Shown piece after piece: positions 42,910-64,000 of a stretch of DNA of 64,000 nt; position 1 is the stretch's first letter, and every line of letters starts with the position of its first letter. Made by a program: the position numbers and the translations under genes. A model generated the notes under the pieces. The model was not told the origin of the DNA and ran no database searches. It saw only the letters and a list, made by a program, of their open reading frames with translations. Origin of the DNA: Bugula neritina (lineage: Eukaryota; Animalia; Bryozoa); contig OZ037773.1 of assembly GCA_964035545.1 (NCBI GenBank), forward strand, positions 10,755,751 through 10,819,750, read 5' to 3'.

Positions 42910-45900
42910 ATGCATGAAGCTTATCAAACCACTTCAATTATCGACAAGCTACCATATACAATCGAGAGTTTAGCTGCTTATGGTAATTCAATTTTCAAAA
43001 TATTAATATCTAAAATTAACAGTGAAACTAGAAGTATATTACTATTTAAATATAAAATTAACTATTATATTTATTATTGAATATTCATTCCGATTATTCA
43101 ATAAATATAATTATTATAATTATATTATTGATTTAGGTATGTCAATGTGTTATTGAAAATCAAATTAAATTTATTGTCAATCTAATCTATCAGTATTACT
43201 ATTGGTATTGCATTTACTATTACAGTAATACTATTAGTGATGCTGAGTCTGATAGTCAATTTCGTAATATTATTTATAGTATTTATAATTAGTAATTACT
43301 TTTGTAATTAACTTTACCTTTAGCTTTAAGTCATAATTATAGAAATACAATAATTTATAATTATAATAATTGTTTAATTTTAATAGTAATATTTTTAATA
43401 TTGTTATTTTAAATTTATATTGTGGTAAATTTTGTTTATTGAATCTTATTTTCATTATTTGTAATTATCACGGTAGAATTATATTTATTATTGTCATGAG
43501 CCTAATCAAATATCATTATGAATATTATGAATATTAATAGTAATACTAATATTGAATTTGATATTCATATCTATAATGCCAATGTGATGGTCATGCTAAT
43601 GAATTAAGAATCTTTACCTTGACTTTTTTTCAGTTTCATTTTGAGCTCAAATTATATTTTTATTCTTGTTTTTTATTTTGTTTTGCAAATGGAAATTAAA
43701 TTTTCTTCATACTGTCATCGTGGTGATATTCAAAGTCATAATGCACAGTTTTAAATTAGGCTATGCTCATGTTGATATTTGTAGTTGCACTCATGTTGAA
43801 ACTGATACTAATACTAACCAACCTTATTGTTTTGAATATTAGCAGTACTCATATTGATTGATTGATTATTATTAATATTATGAACATATAGAGTGTAACA
43901 AGTATTTAGATATTATACTATATATAGTAAGTATACAGATATTATAATATATAGTAAGTATACAGATATTATAACGTATAGTAAGTGCACTGCTGATATA
44001 CTTATTGCTGTTTTGATGTTTCCATAGGAAACAAGCTGATAGTTGGGGCTAGGAATGGCTATGCTCTCGTGTATAGAGTTGACTCTAAAGGTAGACTAAA
44101 GAAATATACAACTTGAATACACTGATGTTGTTACCTGCTAATTATTTATTGCATATATGACAGTATATAGTATAACAGTATATAGTATAACAGTATATAG
44201 TATAACAGTATATAGTATAACAGTATATAGTATAACAGTATATAGTATGACAGTATATAGTATAACAGTATATAGTATGACAGTATATAGTATGGGAGTA
44301 TATAGTATGGCAGTATATAGTATAACAGTATATAGTATAACAGTATATAGTATATAACAGTATATAGTATAACAGTATATAGTATAACAGTATATAGTAT
44401 AACAGTATATAGTATATAACAGTATATAGTATAACAGTATATAGTATAACAGTATATAGTATAACAGTATATAGTATATAACAGTATATAGTATAACAGT
44501 ATATAGTATAATAGTATATAGTATAACAGTATATATTACAACAGTATATAGATTATAGTATAACAGTGTATAGTACATATATAATATGGAATACAGGAGG
44601 CTCCATCTATGAGGTGTCCCTGGAACAAGCCTGTAAGACATTCTCCAAGAAGCCGGTGAGCCAGCTTGAGCCTGTGGAAGGTTTAGACATTCTGCTTAGT
44701 CTGAGTGATGGTAATGTTGGAGTGCATGAGTTGGGGTCACTAAAGGTCATGCCCAGGGCTACAGAGTCTGTCGGTGCTACTAAAGGTGCTGCCAGTGCTT
44801 TTGCTGTTGATGTTCAGGTACTGACTGTAATATACTCTGTAATATACACGGTAATATACACTGTAATATAAACTGTAATATACACTGTAATATACACGGT
44901 AATATACACGGTAATATACACTGTAATATACACTGTAATACATACTGTAATATACACTGTAATATACACTATAATATACACTGTAATATACACTGTAATA
45001 TACACTGTAATATACACTGTACTATACACTGTAATATACACTGTACTATACACTATAATATATACTGTACTATACACTATAATATATACTGTGATATACA
45101 CTGTAATATACACTGTAATATACACTATAATATACACGGTAATATACACTGTAGTATACACTGTAATATACACTGTAATATAAACTGTAATATACACGGT
45201 AATATACACGGTAATATACACTGTAATATACCCTGTAATATACACTGTAATGTACACTGTAATATACACTGTAGTATACACTATAATATACACTGTAATA
45301 TACACTGTAATATACACTGTAATATACACTATAATATACACGGTAATATACACTGTAATATACACGGTAATATACACTGTAGTATACACTGTAATATACA
45401 CTGTAATATACACTGTAATATACACTGTAATATACACTATAATATACACGGTAATATACACTGTAATATACACGGTAATATACACTGTAGTATACACTGT
45501 AGTATACACTGTAGTATACACTGTAATATACACTGTAATATACACTATAATATACACTGTAGTATACACTGTAATATACACTGTAATACACACTGTACTA
45601 TATAATCTATAGGTACTGAAGACATTAGACAACAACAAACAGTGGGCTCTGAAGCTGTGTATCTCGGCTAGGAAAAGTATTTATCTGTATTACTGGAAGA
45701 ACAGCAGTGAGATGTTCACAGAGATGTCTGTAAAGATTCCATTGCAAGATATTGCCAAACAACTGTGTTGGTGTAAATCATCCATTTGTGTTGGTTTTAA
45801 ACGGGAATACTATATGATAGACGTGAGTTATGGATAATCATATGGTATGGACGTTGCACGTATCTTGTGGTATGAATTACAACGTCATCCATGTTTCACT

Positions 45901-48900
45901 ACTTTGTAGATTGATAGTGGGGAAAAGAAGGAGCTGTTCCCTATTGGCCGAAATCTTGATCCACTAATCACAAAAGTTGGAGAAGAAAGTTTGACATTGA
46001 ATAGGGACAATATTAGTGTTGTGATAAATCACGAGGGACAACCAACTCAAAAGTAGGTGCATCTCCTGTGTATCTACTATATAAATTATGTTACTATACA
46101 TACATGATATATGTTGGTATATACTGGTATATGCTGATATATTACTAATATATTACTAATATATTACTGATATATTACTGATATATTACTAATATATTGC
46201 TGGTATATACTCATATATACTAATATATTACTGATATATTACTAATATATTACTGGTAAATACTGATATATTACTGATGTTTGTATACAGACATGGTATC
46301 ACGTGGTCGGAAAGCCCCTCTGCTATGCTCTACAGAGCTCCGTATCTTATTGGCATACTGCCAAGGTTTGTAGAAATCCGAACTATTGAACCGCGACACA
46401 TGATTCAGACGCTGGCGCTTGACAGACCTCGTATTCTCTCTCACTCCAGGTACATGTGTTATATAATATACTATGTAATATATTCTCTCTCACACCAGGT
46501 ACATGTGTTATATAGTATACTATGAAATATATTCTCTCTCACACCAGGTACATGTGTTATATAATATACTATGTAATATATTCTCTCTCACACCAGGTAC
46601 ATGTGTTATATAGTATACTATGTAATATATTCTCTCTCACACCAGGTACATGTGTTATATGATATACTATGTAATATATTCTCTCTCACACCAGGTACAT
46701 GTGTTATATAATATACTATGTAATATATTCTCTCTCACACCAGGTACATGTGTTATATAATATACTATGTAATATATTCTCTCCCACACCAGGTACATGT
46801 GTTATATAATATACTATGTAATATATTCTCTCTCACACCAGGTACATGTGTTATACAATATACTATGTAATATATTCTCTCCCACACCAGGTACATGTGT
46901 TATATAGTATACTATGAAATATATTCTCTCTCACACCAGGTACATGTGTTATATAATATACTATGTAATATATTCTCTCTCATACCAGGTACATGTGTTA
47001 TATAGTATACTATGTAATATATTCTCTCTCACACCAGGTACATGTGTTATATAATATACTATGTAATATATTCTCTCTCACACCAGGTACATGTAGTATA
47101 TAGTATACTATGCAATATATTCTCTCTCACATACAGAGACGGTGCCCTCTACGTAGCCTCTCTCAACTGTGTGTGGAGACTCACTTCTCTGTCTGTGAAG
47201 ATGCAAATCACTGAACTGATCAGTAACAAGGAGTTTGAGTTGGCTCTACTTTTGTCTGTGAGTTCATATATATTACAGTGATATACACTATATCATATAT
47301 TACAGTAATATACACTATATCATATATATTACAGTAATATACACCATATCATATATATTACAGTAATATACACTATATCACATATATTACAGTAATATAC
47401 ACTATATCATATATATTACAGTAATATACACTATATCACATACATTACAGTAATATACACTATATCACATATATTACAGTAATATACACTATATCACATA
47501 TATTACAGTAATATACACTATATCATATATATTACAGTAATATACACTATATCATATATATTACAGTAATATACACTATATCATATATATTACAGTAATA
47601 TACACTATATCACATATATTACAGTAATATACACCATATCATATATATTACAGTAATATACACTATCATATATATTACAGTAATATACACTATCATATAT
47701 ATTACAGTAATATACACTATATCATATATATTACAGTAATATACACTATATCATATATATTACAGTAATATACACTATATCACATATATTACAGTAATAT
47801 ACACTATATCATATATATTACAGTAATATACACTATATCATATATGTTACAGTAATATACACTACATCATATACATTACAGTAATATACACTATATCATA
47901 TATATTACAGTGATATACACTATATCATATATATTACAGTAATATACACTATATCATATATATTACAGTAATATACACTATATCATATATATTACAGTAA
48001 TATACACTATATCATATATATTACAGTAATATACACTATATCATATATATTACAGTAATATACACTATATCATATATATTACAGTGATATACACTATATC
48101 ATATATATTACAGTAATATACACTATATCATATATATTACAGTAATATACACTATATCATATATATTACAGTAATATACACTATATCATATATATTACAG
48201 TAATATACACTATATCATATATATTACAGTAATATACACTATATCATATATATTACAGTAATATACACTATATCATATATATTACAGTGATATACACTAT
48301 ATCATATATATTACAGTAATATACACTATATCATATATATTACAGTAATATACACTACATCATATATATTACAGTAATATACACTATATCACATATATTA
48401 CAGTAATATACACTATATCACATATATTACAGTAATACACTATATCATATATATTACAGTAATATACACCATATCCTATATATTACAAGGTATATTACTG
48501 TTGCAGGAGTCTAACAGGTCAGGAAATCTTGAGTCCAGTTTCAAAGGTGCCGAGCAGCAGCTCAACTCTATTAAAAATCTCCATGCATTTGAGTTGTTCT
48601 CCCAGAAGAGGTTTGCTGATTCTATGGGGAAGTTTGCCGACCTGCCTACTGATCCCAGCCACGTGATTGGTCTATACTCGGACCTTTTGCCCTGGGAGTT
48701 TCGGGCTCGAATACAGTATCCACGGGAGGTGGAGGAGTTTAGAGGGTGTGACAGAGAGAACGCCCTGGGAGCTCTCATAGATTACCTGACAGTGGTAAGC
48801 CTACGTCATTCAGAGTACTATGTTAGCATAGTATAATACAGAGTACTATGTTAGCATAGTATAATACAGAGTACTATGTTAGCATAGTATAATACAGAGT

Positions 48901-51900
48901 ACTATGTTAGCATAGTATAATACAGAATAGTATGTTAGCATAGTATAATACAGAGTACTATGTTAGCATAGTATAATACAGAGTACTATGTTAGCATAGT
49001 ATAATACAGAGTACTATGTTAGCATAGTATAATACAGAGTACTATGTTAGCATAGTATAATACAGAGTACTATGTTAGCATAGTATAATACAGAGTACTA
49101 TGTTAGCATAGTATAATACAGAGTACTATGTTAGCATAGTATAATACAGAATAGTATGTTAGCATAGTATAATACAGAATACTATGTTAGCATAGTATAA
49201 TACAGAGTACTATGTTAGCATAGTATAATACAGAATAGTATGTTAGCATAGTATAATACAGAGTACTATGTTAGCATAGTATAATACAGAGTACTATGTT
49301 AGCATAGTATAATACAGAATAGTATGTTAGCATAGTATAATACAGAGTACTATGTTAGCATAGTATAATACAGAGTACTATGTTAGCATAGTATAATACA
49401 GAATAGTATGTTAGCATAGTATAATACAGAGTACTATGTTAGCATAGTATAATACAGAATAGTATGTTAGCATAGTATAATACAGAGTACTATGTTAGCA
49501 TAGTATAATACAGAGTACTATGTTAGCATAGTATAATACAGAGTACTATGTTAGCATAGTATAATACAGAGTACTATGTTAGCATAGTATAATACAGAGT
49601 ACTATGTTAGCATAGTATAATACAGAGTACTATGTTAGCATAGTATAATACAGAGTACTATGTTAGCATAGTATAATACAGAGTACTATGTTAGCATAGT
49701 ATAATACAGAATACTATGTTAGCATAGTATAATACAGAATACTATGTTAGCATAGTATAATACAGAGTACTATGTTAGCATAGTATAATTCAGAGTACTA
49801 TGTTAGCATAGTATAATACAGAGTACTATGTTAGCATAAGTATAATAGTGTGTTATGTTATTAAAGCATCACAGTAATACTCTGTATATACTCTCTCGCT
49901 AACTGTTGTAACAGAAAAGGGCGGAGTTCTCAAAGTTAGATAAGAATGAGAAAGAGATTCATACGGAGCCTCTTATTGAAGGAAGTAAAACTATGAGGAG
50001 TCGAAAACAGCTCAGTCAGATTATTGACACGACTTTACTGAAGTGTTACCTTGAGGTATACTTACTGCAGATTATCTCTTCTATACTTACTGCAGATTAT
50101 CTCTTCTATACTTACTGCAGATTATCTCTTCTATACTTACTGCAGATTATCTCTACTATACTTACTGCAGATTATCTCTTCTATACTTACTGCAGATTAT
50201 CTCTTCTATACTTACTGCAGATTATCTCTTCTATACTTACTGCAGATTATCTCTTCTATACTCACTGCAGATTATCTCTACTATACTTACTGCAGATTAT
50301 CTCTACTATACTTACTGCAGATTATCTCTTCTATACTTACTGCAGATTATCTCTTCTATACTTACTGCAGATTATCTCTTCTATACTTACTGCAGATTAT
50401 CTCTTCTATACTTACTGCAGATTATCTCTACTATACTTACTGCAGATTATCTCTTCTATACTTACTGCAGATTATCTCTTCTATACTTACTGCAGATTAT
50501 CTCTACTATACTTACTGCAGATTATCTCTTCTATACTCACTGCAGATTATCTCTGTAGATCTGCAGATTATCTCTTTAGATAAATGACGCTTTGGTTGCC
50601 CCTCTGCTCAGACTGAAAGACAATTTCTGTCACATTGAGGAGAGTGAGACGGTGTTGAGGGCCAACGGCAAACTGGATGAGCTCATCATTCTCTACGAGA
50701 CGAAACAACTGCATGAGAAAGGTGGGAAACTTGTTATATGTTAGTGATATACTTGTAATATGTTAGTAATATACTTGTAATATGTTAGTAATATACTTGT
50801 TATATGTTAGTAATATACTTGTTATATGTTAGTAATATACTTGTTATATGTTAGTAATATACTTGTTATATGTTAGTAATATACATGTTATATGTTAGTA
50901 ATATACTTGTTATATGTTAGTAATATACATGTTATATGTCAGTAATATACTTGTTATATGCTATTAGTTGAAATATTTTAGCCCTGAACCTGCTGCTTCA
51001 ACAGTCTCAGTCAACTAATGCTCCGAGCTCCCTTCGAGGCGTTGAAAGAACTGTAGACTATCTACAGAAGTTGGATAGAACTCAGTCTAAGATCATCTTT
51101 AACTACTCTGTGTGGGTGATGAAAGCAGATCCTGAGAAAGGTCTTTCTGTGAGTTATAATACTTGTTATACATATCATATATTAGCTACTATTACTTGCT
51201 ATACATATCATATACCAGCTACTATTACTTGTTATACATATCATATATTAGCTACTATTACTTGTTATACATATCATATATCAACTACTATTACTTGTTA
51301 TACATATCATATATCAGCTACTATTACTTGTTATACATATCATATATTAGCTACTATTACTTGTTATACATATCATATATCAACTACTATTACTTGTTAT
51401 ACATATCATATATCAGCTACTATTACTTGTTATACATATCATATATTAGCTACTATTACTTGTTATACATATCATATATCAACTACTATTACTTGCTATA
51501 CATATCATATATCAACTACTATTACTTGTTATACATATCATATATTAGCTACTATTACTTGCTATACATATCATATATCATATATTAGCTACTATTACTT
51601 GTTATACATATCATATATCAACTACTATTACTTGCTATACATATCATATATCAACTACTATTACTTGTTATACATATCATATATTAGCTACTATTACTTG
51701 CTATACATATCATATATCAGCTACTATTACTTGTTATACATATCATATATTAGCTACTATTACTTGTTATACATATCATATATCAACTACTATTACTTGC
51801 TATACATATCATATATCAGCTACTATTACTTGCTATACATATCATATATCAGCTACTATTACTTGCTATACATATCATATATCAGCTACTAATACTTGCT

Positions 51901-54299
51901 ATACATATCATATATCAGCTACTATTACTTGTTATACATATCATATATTAGCTACTATTACTTGTTATACATATCATATATCAGCTACTATTACTTGTTA
52001 TACATATCATATATCAGCTAATTATCTTATATTGTATACCACGTCTCTTGGTTGTACAGATATTCACAGATGAGTTGCTGGAAAAGGAGCAGAGACTTCC
52101 TGTTGAAAAAGTTGTTTCATTTCTCCAAAATCTTGAGAATGGCAATAAACTTGTTCTCCATTATCTGGTGAGTTTTTTCTTTCTCTTTCTCTCTTTCCCC
52201 CCCTCTCTCTCTCTCCCCCTCCCCCTCCCCCTCCCCCTCCCCCTCTCTCCTTCTCTCCCTCTCTCTCGTTATAGTTCATCTACATTTGTTTTCCTGGCAT
52301 AATATAATATATTATATAATGTGTAATATAATATCTTAACTACTTTAGAAACATGTTGTCATTGAATGGCGAGAAACAAACAGTGAATACCATGACCAGT
52401 TGGTGAATTCTTACAGAGAGGAGATAACTCCTATGTTAGCAGAGTATATATCTAGTCTACCAGAAGGTATAGTAAATGTAGTAATATATATTAGTATATA
52501 GCTATGATATTGGCAGAGTATATATAATATACTCATATATATATATACAATGTAGGCCAGTCTCCAGCCCCTGCAGGTTCAGAGGAAGGTGAACTAGGTG
52601 ATCTGAGAGCACAACTCCTACACTTCCTTGATGTTTCTAAATTCTACAGAGCAAATCAACTGATTCGGCGTTTCCCATATGAATGTACGTAATAATATAA
52701 TAATATATGAATGTACGTAATAATATAATAATATATGAATGTACGTAATAATATAATAATATATGAATGTACGTAATAATATAATAATATATGAATGTAT
52801 GTAATAATATACTAATATGTGAATGTACGTAATATAATAAAATACGAATACTAATATATAAATATAGTGTATATTATGTTGGAAGCAGATTTCCACGAAG
52901 AGAGAGCCGTGCTGTTGGGTAGATGTGGACACCATAAACAGGCTCTGTTCATATACGTTCACATTCTACAGAGAATGGAGATGGCAGAGGAGTATTGTAG
53001 ACAGTATTATAAGAAAGATGTGTCTGGCGATTGTGATGTGAGCTTTTCATAATATCTATGCCGTAGTAGTAATATAATACGCATATATACTGTACTAGTA
53101 ATATAGTAATATAATACGCGTATATACTGTACTAGTAATATAGTAATATAATACACATATATACTGTAGTATAATAATATAATAATATATTACAGGTGTA
53201 CGTACACCTACTCAGCTACTATCTCAGACCACTGGATTCCTTGGTGGATGCCAGACAGCTATACGGCCCTCACTATGGCCTCCAGGATACGCAGCAGAAT
53301 CACGCTGCCGCTTTGAAGATATTGAAACAACACGCAGGCAAAGTTGACAGTAGAAAAGTTCTTGACTTGATACCAGATGACTTTCCTCTCTCCCACTTAC
53401 TTCCCTACCTGGAGAGTATTATAGAGAAGGGAGAGATCCAGAAGAGAGAGAACCTGGTTCTACGTAACCTCCTTCACTCTGAGAAACTTACAGTGAGTTC
53501 CTATATGTACTGTACTATACTGTAGTATACTCTGTACTATATATATACTATACTACACACTGTACTATACTGTAGTATATACTGTACTACACACTGTACT
53601 ATACACTGTACTATACTGTAGTATACTCTGTACTATATACACTGTACTATACACACTGTAGTATACACTGTACTATACACTGTACTATACTGTAGTATAC
53701 ACTGTACTACACACTGTACTATACACTGTAATATACACTGTACTATACACTGTACTATAAAAATGTAATAGTGTGTTGTTGGAGTTATCTATTCATGCTG
53801 ATGTTTACAGATTGAAAGGTCAAGGATAATGTGTGAAAGGGTGAAGTTTGTGGTGACGGAGAAAAGCACTTGCTTTGTGTGTCAAAATAAGATTAGTACC
53901 AGGTACCAGATATATGCATAGTATACTATCTAGTATAGTATACTATACTATCTAGCATGTATACTATACTACTATCTAGTGTGTATACTACACTATCTAG
54001 TATGTATACTATACTATCTAGCATGTATACTATACTATCTAGTATGTATACTATACTATCTAGTATAGTATATTATACTATCTAGTATGTATACTATACT
54101 ATCTAGTATGTATACTATACTATCTAGTGCGTATACTACACTATCTAGTGTGTATACTATACTACCATCTAGTGCGTGTACTAGTACTAGTATACTAGCC
54201 TATACTACACTGTATATTTGCAGCTCCTTTGTGAGACATTCCCAGAATTCCTTGGCACATTTAAGTTGCCTTGACAGCAAGGCTATGGATGTCGGCTGA
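42910..54299 (+). CDS. VPS39: Vam6/Vps39-like protein, HOPS subunit (~898 aa, 18 exons)
   Basis: Exons 42910-42982, 44028-44090, 44597-44817, 45613-45822, 45910-46052, 46291-46449, 47137-47257, 48507-48794, 49915-50055, 50580-50721, 50982-51148, 52060-52167, 52349-52466, 52556-52684, 52889-53037, 53196-53492, 53811-53902, 54224-54299; GT-AG, 2697 nt. Motifs MHEAY...KLP..IE.LA, PYLIGILPRFVEIRT, KEFELAL, TDPSHVIGLY, QIIDTTLLKCYL, HEERAVLLGR.G.H.QAL and C-terminal CxxC...HxxC. Confidence 0.95.
44153..45604. repeat. 15-bp ACAGTATATAGTATA array (44153-44570) and 12-bp TATACACTGTAA array (44824-45604) in VPS39 introns 2 and 3
   Basis: Seen directly. Confidence 0.93.
46432..47136 (+). repeat. 49-bp array making up all of VPS39 intron 6; unit GTACATGTGTTATATAATATACTATGTAATATATTCTCTCTCACACCAG
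   Basis: CAG|GTACAT recurs every 49 bp from 46449 to 47086 (14 junctions); a final 50-bp unit ends at the true acceptor, 47136. Confidence 0.95.
47265..48488. repeat. 29-bp array (CATATATATTACAGTAATATACACTATAT) in VPS39 intron 7
   Basis: About 42 copies. Confidence 0.95.
48811..49846. repeat. 28-bp array (CAGAGTACTATGTTAGCATAGTATAATA) in VPS39 intron 8
   Basis: About 37 copies. Confidence 0.95.
50057..50579. repeat. 25-bp array (TATACTTACTGCAGATTATCTCTTC) filling VPS39 intron 9
   Basis: About 20 copies, from the donor GT to the acceptor ATTATCTCTTTAG. Confidence 0.95.
50729..52020. repeat. 22-bp ACTTGTTATATGTTAGTAATAT array (50729-50960) and 33-bp TACTTGTTATACATATCATATATCAGCTACTAT array (51160-52020) in VPS39 introns 10 and 11
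   Basis: Seen directly; both units contain TACTTGTTATA. Confidence 0.93.
52677..52840 (+). repeat. 28-bp array spanning the VPS39 exon 14 donor (ATATGAAT|GTACGTAATAATATAATAAT)
   Basis: About 6 copies, each reproducing the exon end plus the donor. Confidence 0.9.
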
Positions 54300-59404: not shown

Positions 59405-61170
59405 CATATTACATAGGAGGAGTCAAAAAGACATTCTGGATTCTGCTAACTGTAGCGTGTTGCAGTGCACTCATTGTTCACACTTACAGCCTCATTTCCA
59501 GATTCTCTCAGTTCCCTGTCACTACCGAGGTTACTGTTGTCAATGCGAAAATCTTAGACTTTCCAGGTGGGCCTTAGTCTAGCAATATGTCAGCAGGTGT
59601 CTACTGACAGGTGTCTACTGACAGGTTTGTCTGACAGTTTATAATTACTTATCTATTGCAGCGGTGACAGTCTGTAACAGCAACATGCTAGCTGTACACA
59701 GCCCTGCTAATACCTCCAACACCACCTTCGATTACAAGAATGCCCGAACTGTCAACAACCAGATCAACTATTGTGAGTTGAATAATACACTCTATAAATG
59801 TATGTACACACACGCACACGCACATATATAATACACTGTCACTCTAATATCTCACATCTGACTCAACTTAACCTCTACTCAATTTACTGTAGTGAAACTC
59901 AACAATTCTCAGCTCGGACACCAAAAAGAAGATTTCATTCTCTCCGCCACATTTAATAGCGTAGCTCTGACATTGGACGACTTTGAGTTGTCTCTACATG
60001 GTTTATATGGCAACTGCTTTACCTTTAATGCTAATGGAAGTGCTCAAGTTCGCAGATCTGTACATGGCTTTTATGGTGAATATCATACTTCTCTCTCTCT
60101 ATCTCTCTCTACTCTACTTCTCTCTCCCTCTCCCTCTCTGTGAGGCAATATTGCTGTCTGGTCTTGTAGGATTAGAGTTGGTTCTGAACATTGAAACATA
60201 CAAATACTACATGGGACCGCTGACCTACCCTCTGGACTTTGCTGCTGCTTGGTTGAAGGTGTCCAAGCCAGGGGCAGCTTTTAAAATAGAAGAGATGAGT
60301 GTTGCTGTTTCTCCAAACACCATCAATATTCTCTCTATACATCAGGTAACTATATATATGTTATACATTATACACTATCTATATTCTCTCTATACATCAG
60401 GTAACTATATATATGTTATACATTATACACTATCTATATTCTCTCTATACATCAGGTAACTATATATATGTTATACATTATACACTATCAATATTCTCTC
60501 TATACATCAGGTAACTATATATATGTTATACATTATACACTATCTATATTCTCTCTATACATCAGGTAACTATATATATGTTATACATTATACACTATCA
60601 ATATTCTCTCTATACATCAGGTAACTATATACATGTTATACATTATACACTATCTATATTCTCTCTATACATCAGGTAACTATATATATGTTATACATTA
60701 TACACTATCTATATTCTCTCTATTTATCAAGTGACTATATATGTGTGCGTGTATGTATATACTATATACTACACTTGTATGTTTGCGACAGACTAACTTT
60801 GCTCGGCTAGGCATTCCATACGGAGATTGCTTCAGAGAAGACGATCCCAAACCCCTACTTTATCAGAAGAACAAAAGCTATGATAAGGACTTGTGTGATA
60901 ACACGTGCCTGCAAAGAGCGGTAATACAGTAATACAGTAATAGAGTAATACAGTAATAGAGTATTACAGTGGTGTCATAGTATAGAAATATACGAGTACT
61001 AATATGATGGTATAGTAATGCAGTAATATAATATTATGATATTGTTTATCTGCAGGTAATATTAGAGTGTTGTTGTTATATCAGTATAGTAGAAACCAAT
61101 ATAGCAGAGTTTGATGAGTCATGGGAATTGTGTAGACGAGACAACATAACGGAATGTGCAACTGATAATA
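57484..61170 (+). CDS. DEG/ENaC (amiloride-sensitive/ASIC-like) channel subunit, 5' part; the gene continues beyond the window
   Basis: Exons 57484-57744, 58016-58112, 59417-59566, 59662-59772, 59893-60075, 60170-60345, 60792-60920, 61056-61170, in consistent phase. TM1 KKTFWILLTVACCSALIV, then F.QFPVTT, LDFPAVTVCNSN, LGHQKEDFI, YGNCFTFN, GLELVLNIE, LGIPYGDC and Y...LC...CLQ..V...C.C. Confidence 0.9.
57764..58833. repeat. 33-bp array (CTGTGTGGYGTCACAATGTTTACTCTATTACTA, 57764-58010) and 28-bp array (CACTTGTGTTGTGTGTCATGTCTTATAG, 58150-58833) in ENaC introns 1 and 2
   Basis: Seen directly. Confidence 0.92.
59125..59324. repeat. Perfect 200-bp spacerless palindrome between two (TA)n tracts
   Basis: 100-bp arms centred on CACT|AGTG (59224/59225); (TA)n at about 59029-59061 and 59323-59401. 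Confidence 0.95.
60321..60740 (+). repeat. 55-bp array spanning the ENaC exon 6 donor; unit GTAACTATATATATGTTATACATTATACACTATCWATATTCTCTCTATACATCAG
   Basis: CAG|GTAACT at 60345, 60400, 60455, 60510, 60565, 60620 and 60675. Confidence 0.95.
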
Positions 61171-64000
61171 GTAAGTGTTGTATAGTAATAGTACTGTATA
61201 GTAATAGTACTGTATAGTAATAGTACTGTATAGTAATAGTAAGTACTGTATAGTAATAGTAAGTATTGTATAGTAATAGTAAGTACTGTATAGTAATAGT
61301 ACTGTATAGTAATAGTAAGTACTGTATAGTAATAGTAAGTATCATATAGTAATAGTAAGTACTGTATAGTAATAGTAAGTACTGTATAGTAATAGTAAGT
61401 ATCATATAGTAATAGTAAGCACTGTATAGTAATAGTAAGTACTGTATAGTAATAGTAAGTACTGTATAGTAATAGTAAGTATCATATAGTAATAGTAAGC
61501 ACTGTATAGTAATAGTAAGTACTGTATAGTAATAGTAAGTACTGTATAGTAATAGTAAGTACTGTATAGTAATAGTACTGTATAGTAATAGTAAGTACTG
61601 TATAGTAATAGTAAGTACTGTATAGTAATAGTAAGTACTGTATAGTAATAGTAAGTACTGCATAGTAATAGTAAGTACTGTATAGTAATAGTAAGTACTG
61701 TATAGTAATAGTAAGTACTGTATAGTAATAGTAAGTACTGTATAGTAATAGTAAGTACTGTATAGTAATAGTACTGTATAGTAATAGTAAGTACTGTATA
61801 GTAATAGTAAGTACTGTATAGTAATAGTAAGTACTGTATAGTAATAGTAAGTACTGCATAGTAATAGTAAGTACTGTATAGTAATAGTAAGTACTGTATA
61901 GTAATAGTAAGTACTGTATAGTAATAGTAAGTATTGTATAGTATTAGTAAGTATCGTATAGTAATAGTAAGTACTGTATAGTAATAGTAAGTATCATATA
62001 GTAATAGTAAGCACTGTATAGTAATAGTACTGTATAGTAATAGTAAGTACTGTATAGTAATAGTAAGTACTGTATAGTAATAGTAAGTACTGTATAGTAA
62101 TAGTAAGTACTGTATAGTAATAGTAAGTACTGTATAGTAATAGTAAGTACTGTATAGTAATAGTAAGTACTGTATAGTAATAGTAAGTACTGTATAGTAA
62201 TAGTAAGTACTGTATAGTAATAGTAAGCACTGTATAGTAATAGTAAGTACTGTATAGTAATAGTAAGTACTGTATAGTAATAGTAAGTACTGTATAGTAA
62301 GTACTGTATAGTAATAGTAAGTATTGTATAGTAATAGTAAGTACTGTATAGTAATAGTAAGTACTGTATAGTAATAGTAAGTATTGTATAGTAATAGTAA
62401 GTACTGTATAGTAATAGTAAGTATTGTATAGTAATAGTAAGTACTGTATAGTAATAGTAAGTATTGTATAGTAATAGTAAGTACTGTATAGTAATAGTAA
62501 GTACTGTATAGTAATAGTAAGTATCATATAGTAATAGTAAGCACTGTATAGTAATAGTAAGTACTGTATAGTAATAGTAAGTACTGTATAGTAATAGTAA
62601 ATACTGTGTAGTAATAGTAAGTACTGTATAGTAATAGTAAGTACTGTATAGTAATAGTAAGTACTGTATAGTAATAGCAAGTACTGTATAGTAGTAATAG
62701 TACTGTATAGTAATAGTAAGTACTGTATAGTAATAGTAAGTATTGTATAATAACAGTAAGTACTGTATAGTAATAGTAAGCACTGTATAGTAATAGTAAG
62801 TACTGTATAGTAATAGTAAGTACTGTATAGTAATAGTAAGTATTGTATAATAATAGTAAGTACTGTATAGTAATAGTAAGTACTGTATAGTAATAGTACT
62901 GTATAGTAATAGTAAGTACTGTATAGTAATAGTAAGTACTGTATAGTAATAGTAAGTACTGTATAGTAATAGTAAGTATTGTATAGTAATAGTAAGTACT
63001 GTATAGTAATAGTAAGTACTGTATAGTAATAGTACTGTATAGTAAGTATTGTATAGTAATAGTAAGTATTGTATAATAACAGTAAGTACTGTATAGTAAT
63101 AGTAAGCACTGTATAGTAATAGTAAGTACTGTATAGTAATAGTAAGTACTGTATAGTAATAGTAAGTATTGTATAATAATAGTAAGTACTGTATAGTAAT
63201 AGTAAGCACTGTATAGTAATAGTAAGCACTGTATAGTAATAGTAAGTGCTGTATAGTAATAGTAAGCACTGTATAGTAATAGTAAGCACTGTATAGTAAT
63301 AGTAAGTGCTGTATAGTAATAGTAAGTACTGTATAGTAATAGTAAGTAGTGTATAGTAATAGTAAGTATTGTATAATAATAGTAAGTACTGTATAGTAAT
63401 AGTAAGTACTGTATAGTAATAGTACTGTATAGTAATAGTAAGTACTGTATAGTAATAGTAAGTACTGTATAGTAATAGTAAGTACTGTATAGTAATAGTA
63501 AGTATTGTATAGTAATAGTAAGTACTGTATAGTAATAGTAAGTACTGTATAGTAATAGTACTGTATAGTAAGTATTGTATAGTAATAGTAAGTATTGTAT
63601 AATAACAGTAAGTACTGTATAGTAATAGTAAGCACTGTATAGTAATAGTAAGTACTGTATAGTAATAGTAAGTACTGTATAGTAATAGTAAGTATTGTAT
63701 AATAATAGTAAGTACTGTATAGTAATAGTAAGCACTGTATAGTAATAGTAAGCACTGTATAGTAATAGTAAGTGCTGTATAGTAATAGTAAGCACTGTAT
63801 AGTAATAGTAAGCACTGTATAGTAATAGTAAGTGCTGTATAGTAATAGTAAGTACTGTATAGTAATAGTAAGTAGTGTATAGTAATAGTAAGTATTGTAT
63901 AGTAATAGTAAGTACTGTATAGTAATAGTAAGCACTGTATAGTAATAGTAAGCACTGTATAGTAATAGTAAGTGCTGTATAGTAATAGTAAGCACTGTAT
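61165..64000 (+). repeat. 20-bp array (TAGTAATAGTAAGTACTGTA), >2.8 kb, starting at the ENaC exon 8 donor and running off the window
   Basis: About 140 units; the first unit is the junction TAATA|GTAAGT. Confidence 0.96.

Follow-up and report, generated by a model that had tools for sequence, protein, structure and literature searches.

The window analysed here, a 64-kb stretch (64,000 nucleotides (nt)) of the genome of the bryozoan Bugula neritina whose numbering is used throughout, carries the gene VPS39, one intron of which (46450–47136) consists of 14 head-to-tail repeat units. Fourteen exon-sized high-scoring segment pairs, spanning 42910–53906, are collinear with the full-length VPS39 orthologue P0009, and the exon at 48507–48794 matches VPS39-type proteins in a protein search. 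The orthologues matched by the exons of the window carry the CNH, Vps39_1 and zf-Vps39_C domains, which bears out the assignment to VPS39 made in the initial annotation, a reading of the sequence without database searches. VPS39 is single copy in the assembly; genome searches covered 216,009,554 bases.

The array-bearing intron is in phase 2. The upstream exon (46291–46449, + strand) translates as ...EIRTIEPRHMIQTLALDRPRILSHS, ends within the split codon AG|A and aligns gap-free to the orthologues P0002, P0003, P0009 and P0013. Its limits, 46291 and 46449, are the exon borders given by RNA contigs (assembled Logan contigs, of a kind that drops rare forms). The downstream exon (47137–47257, + strand) encodes DGALYVASLNCVWRL...ELALLLS and is covered by contig pieces 47134–47258, with a loose end that runs into exon 48507. 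A protein search with the read-through open reading frame 46235–46522 gave nothing.

Anatomy and excision of the array

The sole array reported at this place by Tandem Repeats Finder (TRF) spans 46432–47131, with a period of 49, 14.3 copies, 95% matches, no indels and a score of 1288. Cut at every AG|GTACAT, the 687-nt intron (46450–47136, + strand) yields 14 units, 13 of them 49 nt long and the last 50 nt, all of which start with GTACAT and end in a pyrimidine tract and CAG. Five units match the consensus exactly and eight deviate from it in one or two places, whereas divergence is clearly greatest in the last. The first 18 nt of the array belong to the upstream exon: the exon end (46432–46449, + strand) is a copy of the 3′ segment of the unit at 17 of 18 positions, and is the presumed source of the exon-derived part of the units. 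The register of the array is aligned with the donor, and its end, a 19-nt partial copy, falls exactly at the acceptor. The final copy (47087–47136, + strand) carries an extra base and a substitution (CACATACAG compared with CACACCAG), and its exon-derived pyrimidine tract and CAG form the working acceptor, with the joint at 47137. The initial annotation had described 14 head-to-tail units with both exon edges as versions of the unit, an anatomy that TRF and the cutting at AG|GTACAT uphold in every detail.

The 13 internal junctions read TCTCTCTCACACCAG|GTACAT, a polypyrimidine-AG directly against a GT donor that lacks the consensus G at +5. The earlier description of each internal junction as a pyrimidine tract and CAG|GT is thus formally true at all of them. 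GTACAT is shared by 14/14 donors and a pyrimidine tract followed by CCAG by 13 acceptors, and inspection of the sequence places a branch-like TAAT approximately 20 nt ahead of the CAG in each unit. An A/G difference at unit position 17 alternates across units 1–4 and 10–14, which suggests that the array grew partly by two-unit (98-nt) steps.

Intron 46450–47136 is real and is exactly excised. The exact joint 46449|47137, with 687 nt skipped between GT and AG, is present in the RNA contigs of three studies (X1, X4 and X12), in which the preceding 238-nt intron (46053–46290) is likewise skipped; splicing of the host gene across the array is therefore intact. Translated, the spliced exons give a VPS39 segment whose alignment to the orthologues is gap-free. 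No partial joint formed with an internal unit end was found in any RNA contig set, and contigs cannot show rare forms. At the downstream junction, mature RNA reads ...CACTCCAG|AGACGG, unspliced RNA ...CACATACAG|AGACGG, and the joining of an internal unit end to exon 2 ...CACACCAG|AGACGG. The product of splicing the first donor to an internal acceptor has the same sequence as unspliced RNA, and short reads are blind to it from the 5′ side. In a DNA run (X14), the unit forms a 79-nt cyclic unitig (49 + k − 1) with a depth of 372 compared with a single-copy depth of 81.5, or approximately 4.6-fold, which fits the five exact consensus units and makes an assembly artefact unlikely. The same cyclic unitig occurs in RNA runs of three other studies, where the collapsed depths of the array unitig are 43, 161 and 2.7 and those of the exons 53, 563 and 30.

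The exons in RNA contigs X1, X4 and X12 are 90–95% identical to the assembly; over 46291–47257 the differences amount to 5–9% of exon positions and comprise synonymous changes as well as replacements (V>I, A>P, S>G and L>F). These contigs concur with one another and share variants with L013, a genomic contig of a Joint Genome Institute (JGI) metagenome, which indicates that the public RNA data derive from a sister lineage that has diverged from that of the sequenced animal; as judged from these variants, the RNA contigs and L013 fit a sister lineage within a species complex. A paralogue as the source of the diverged contigs was rejected, since the assembly contains none.

Intron position and origin of the array

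Genomic loci of VPS39 orthologues were found through a search with exon 48507–48794 and then compared at the split codon. In an invertebrate locus (L017), the codon aligned to the split codon R53 is interrupted by a 227-nt phase-2 intron (TGG GG|GTGAGG...TTTAG|A GAT), and a phase-2 intron also interrupts the homologous codon of a fish-like vertebrate (L016; GCG GG|GTGAGG...CACAG|G TCA). The shared codon and phase mark the position as ancestral and not as a product of duplication. On this comparison, the position of the VPS39 intron is ancient and conserved across bilaterians, with the array having replaced only the content of the intron. In a third locus (L012, 5401–6700), which belongs to orthologue P0002 in a GC-rich genome, the counterpart of this intron is displaced 10 nt downstream and is in phase 0; this offset may reflect intron sliding or a choice of annotation. 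Two scans of metagenome contigs, one with a junction query and one with an exon 21-mer query, returned no example of the locus from other lineages.

The exon end encodes ILSHS(R), which corresponds residue for residue and with no indel to FITSAG, MLCSWG and YICQG- of the orthologues, in a pattern of hydrophobic-[IL]-[TCS]-[SQH]-x-G. This fit makes it most likely that the exon end is ancestral coding sequence from which the 18 nt of each unit were copied. The unit itself has no other copy anywhere in the 216 Mb searched. The next-best BLAST matches, at 70–77% identity, are AT-rich arrays, and the one inspected (L005) is built of an unrelated 24-nt unit. Confinement to one locus indicates that the unit does not belong to a mobile intron or introner-like family.

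The locus is probably best explained as an ancient VPS39 intron whose whole interior has been replaced by a minisatellite of the 'mirage' type, that is, one that spans an exon–intron boundary. A 49-nt segment across the donor, comprising the last 18 nt of the exon and the first 31 nt of the intron, would have been duplicated in tandem, and slippage or unequal exchange would then have raised the number of copies to 14, in part by adding two units (98 nt) at a time. The old 3′ part of the intron would have been lost, with the terminal exon-derived copy, pyrimidine-rich and ending in CAG, taking over as polypyrimidine tract and acceptor; the extra base and the substitution of the last copy may be the trace of a hybrid joint to that acceptor. 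Both the direction of copying, from exon to array, and the disappearance of the old acceptor are inferred from the sequence. Each unit reads as a mini-intron that runs from GT through a pyrimidine tract to CAG, owing to a pyrimidine-rich exon end with a terminal CAG. The first donor and the last acceptor would normally be paired in one step through exon definition, and any other pairing of sites would leave a shorter version of the intron, spliceable again if at least two units remain. The initial annotation had noted that copy number can vary without altering the mRNA; this holds, but equally for any intronic array.

Junction arrays in the window and the genome

The same process is supported by arrays at other junctions, namely at 60317–60746 in a neighbouring ENaC-like gene, at 52677–52834 in VPS39 itself, and at the loci L037, L025, L026, L028, L032 and L033. 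The ENaC-like junction array (60317–60746, + strand) has a 55-nt unit that combines approximately 31 nt of exon end with 24 nt of intron start; downstream of its 7.8 copies comes a unique tail that has an acceptor of its own near 60791. The second boundary-spanning array of VPS39 (52677–52834, + strand) has a 28-nt unit that joins 8 nt of exon end to the donor GTACGT and is without an acceptor motif. After an ENaC-like exon that ends in ...GATAATA|GTAAGT, a 20-nt array occupies 61165–64000 and repeats TAATA|GTAAGT more than 100 times; by its sequence it is a donor-decoy array without an acceptor motif.

The window contains approximately 45 arrays, and almost every long intron has a private minisatellite. 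The VPS39 introns 44818–45612, 47258–48506, 48795–49914 and 50056–50579 are 93–99% array. In the long introns of the gene (44818–52020) the arrays begin 2–11 nt past the donor and stop 0–70 nt short of the acceptor. The intron at 50056–50579 (+ strand) is wholly occupied by a 25-nt array from donor+2 up to the acceptor; that acceptor, TCTCTTTAG, is a mutated unit. Only the short introns are free of arrays: these, the shortest ordinary introns placed in VPS39, measure 87 nt (45823–45909) and 89 nt (52467–52555), in agreement with the earlier figure of ~84–90 nt.

An array 207 kb upstream of the window (L037:2947–3380; G000:C9:10548546–10548979) comprises approximately 16 units of 28 nt, GTATATATATTCTCTCACATGTTACCAG, and runs from an exon ending in ...GTTTACCAG to the acceptor TATTCTCTCTACAG|GG. 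Its unit has the motif TATTCTCTC...CAG|GTA in common with the VPS39 and ENaC units. In a sample of 19 arrays on contig C1, several either begin exactly at CAG|GT behind a flank that resembles the unit end or run from the donor to a short tail. The junction-type arrays of this sample (L032, L025, L019, L026, L033 and L028) have units of 20, 21, 24, 27, 30 and 41 nt. Units of 20–28 nt are too short to be spliced singly, yet they are phased from GT to CAG, which makes the phasing a by-product of copying a junction that ends in CAG. GT...CAG phasing thus reflects the copied junction and not selection for splice-competent units.

Contig C1 also holds a long 38-nt satellite near its start (C1:47378–50589) and a family of 45-nt units at several places between 3.96 and 4.15 Mb (C1:3965017–4153031). 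The recurrence of the 45-nt family on C1 indicates that some arrays of the genome are dispersed families, unlike the intron-private ones.

A genome-wide scan for three CAGGTA at 36–66 nt spacing returned 5782 matches compared with 235 for the reversed pattern. Control scans of the same design gave 3729 matches for AAGGTA and 3278 for the non-splice hexamer CAGCTA, whose distinct arrays are similarly dense at the start of C1. Enrichment of CAG|GTA as a splice-specific signal was therefore rejected, the excess being due to the sheer abundance of arrays.

Contig L013 allows the turnover of arrays to be followed between lineages. Relative to the assembly, its exons are 93.7–95% identical and its unique intron sequence 88% identical, and two neighbouring VPS39 arrays (one of 29-nt units and the 25-nt array at 50056–50579) are kept with identical consensus units. 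The 79-nt unitig of the VPS39 unit likewise shows 100% identity in RNA runs with exons just 90–95% like the assembly. Selection on the unit was rejected as the reason for this identity, because the neighbouring arrays in L013 are equally identical in consensus; slow change of the consensus is a general property of the arrays. Copy number, as far as these sequences indicate, turns over quickly between lineages. The 28-nt array at 48811–49847 (intron 48795–49914) has 37 copies in the assembly and a single unit in L013:569–660, a lineage-specific expansion from a single-copy seed, provided that the short-read contig L013 is not collapsed. The copy number of the 49-nt VPS39 array is that of the assembly, as short-read contigs collapse it.

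Competing explanations and known systems

Several observations weigh against the replacement of the intron interior by a boundary-spanning minisatellite that arose in place. A deletion or a hybrid joint must be assumed for VPS39, which has lost any unique 3′ tail of the old intron, whereas the ENaC, L026 and L032 arrays retain such a tail. Removal of the VPS39 intron in one step is likewise an assumption. The resemblance between the VPS39 and ENaC units is greater than expected, with a global alignment score of 18 compared with 3.3 ± 3.5 for shuffled sequences; by local score, the ENaC unit ties with L008 for the best value, 23, among 123 other arrays (95th percentile, 17). Genome-wide, the pattern TATTCTCTCT-N1-9-CAGGTA is found in arrays at just three loci, all within 270 kb, on the + strand and near the end of contig C9; outside these loci the pattern has four single matches. 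Such a cluster is not what would be predicted if every junction array had arisen purely in situ.

It is conceivable, although we consider it unlikely, that the intron is removed by recursive or stochastic multi-step splicing, in which a substantial share of transcripts would pair an internal site first, remove at least two units per step and re-splice the remainder. In its favour are the shared donor and acceptor sequences and the TAAT ahead of every CAG; a pair of units, at 98 nt, is longer than the shortest ordinary introns of VPS39 (87–89 nt), removal of whole units regenerates a valid intron, and the array unitig occurs in RNA runs at the depths given above. Against this, the donors lack G at +5, and the RNA contigs, which cannot show rare forms, contain no partial joint. 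An intron of 687 nt is fully transcribed before splicing normally completes. The motif also needs no functional explanation, given like-phased arrays whose 20–28-nt units are not singly spliceable and the array at 52677–52834, which has no acceptor. A leftover single unit, at 49 nt shorter than the shortest introns, would carry a cost, since it shifts the frame and leads to a stop in the next exon. Ratchet points are known from very long introns (PMC5126111, PMC6110457), whereas the VPS39 intron has just 687 nt.

A broader version of this idea, which we hold only tentatively and regard as somewhat less probable, would treat the locus as a self-correcting intron. Its equivalent sites would be paired stochastically and the intron removed in several silent steps, arrays would be favoured where the exon end doubles as an acceptor, and they would perhaps spread locally between the junctions of neighbouring genes, as the three arrays within 270 kb might suggest.

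Local copying on its own is a rather remote explanation. A junction array nearby, such as that of ENaC at a distance of 14 kb, would have donated the unit by copy-and-paste, with CAG|GTA microhomology as the site of template switching or ectopic conversion, and part of the exon end of VPS39 would have been converted to match. The resemblance of the two units (global score 18, local score 23) and the confinement of the motif to three clustered arrays in 216 Mb, described above, both favour such copying. The margin is small, however, as other AT-rich arrays score 17–20 against 23, and the common part is mainly the pyrimidine tract and CAG|GTA that are obligatory in any such junction unit. Arrays also looked denser near a contig end (at the start of C1), which would raise the chance of co-location for a window that itself lies approximately 60 kb short of the end of C9. 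The residue pattern of the orthologues is, moreover, matched by the exon end of VPS39.

The initial annotation had hinted that duplication of an AG|GT segment made the intron. Gain through exonic AG|GT tandem duplication (the Rogers model), or through an introner-like insertion with target-site duplication, could account for an AT-rich core flanked by an 18-nt direct repeat of exon sequence. This origin was rejected as highly improbable: the intron has the same position and phase in a fish-like vertebrate and in another invertebrate, which would require independent gain at the same nucleotide, the exon has no indel relative to the orthologues, and the unit is found at one locus only and forms no dispersed family. 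An assembly artefact, for which the initial annotation had allowed, is almost certainly not the explanation: although tandem arrays are classically prone to collapse or expansion, this one is merely 687 nt, its units hold distinct variants in non-periodic order, the depth of the unitig in X14 is that of a repeated unit, and the same unitig recurs in RNA runs of three other studies.

Replacement of the interior of an ancient intron by a boundary-spanning minisatellite, the preferred reading, has its closest parallel in the mirages of amphioxus. These are tandem repeats across exon–intron boundaries with units of 10–160 bp, many with AG/GT signals; normal splicing is kept, the units at the edges escape homogenization and are the most diverged, and lengths are unstable (PMC3087553). 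The cases named there are the globin genes BflGb6 and BflGb9, with Adh3 from earlier work (PMC3087553). The VPS39 array resembles them in its minisatellite-size unit (49 nt), its position across an exon–intron boundary, its AG/GT signals, its intact splicing and its most diverged edge unit. It differs in that it belongs to another phylum and fills the whole intron, and in that an exon-derived copy is its working acceptor, the pyrimidine-rich exon end making each unit a formally complete mini-intron from GT through the tract to CAG. The junction arrays of B. neritina, moreover, sit among private minisatellites in nearly every intron. The locus would thus extend mirage minisatellites from amphioxus to a lophotrochozoan with many similar arrays in the same genome.

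Ratchet points of recursive splicing, in Drosophila Ubx and other genes and in long vertebrate genes, are known as single, conserved sites in very long introns, with intermediates observed (PMC5126111, PMC6110457, PMC8605326). The VPS39 junctions are alike in their juxtaposed (Y)nCAG|GT, which would regenerate a 5′ splice site. In contrast to ratchet points, they are 13 tandem junctions within 687 nt, show no intermediates in the contigs, and have a motif that junction duplication accounts for. With its 14 donors identical and its 13 acceptors nearly so, the 687-nt intron still resolves into one clean mRNA junction; it is a natural experiment in splice-site choice, and a system suited to asking whether short introns can be removed in several steps.

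Introns created by internal tandem duplication of AG|GT under the Rogers model, such as that of potato RdRp (PMC4974935), and the repeat expansion in Cryptococcus (PMC2395259), likewise set copies of splice signals head to tail within a gene by tandem duplication. Those events create a new intron, whereas at VPS39 the position is ancestral and only the content new. A copy of exon sequence has apparently assumed the role of acceptor in this old intron, which would mean that splice signals can turn over while intron position is unchanged. Introners and introner-like elements are short, carry their own splice signals, are sometimes flanked by target duplications and form dispersed multi-copy families. 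The VPS39 unit shares with them its short length, its own splice signals and the flanking duplication of exon sequence, and differs from them in its restriction to one locus.

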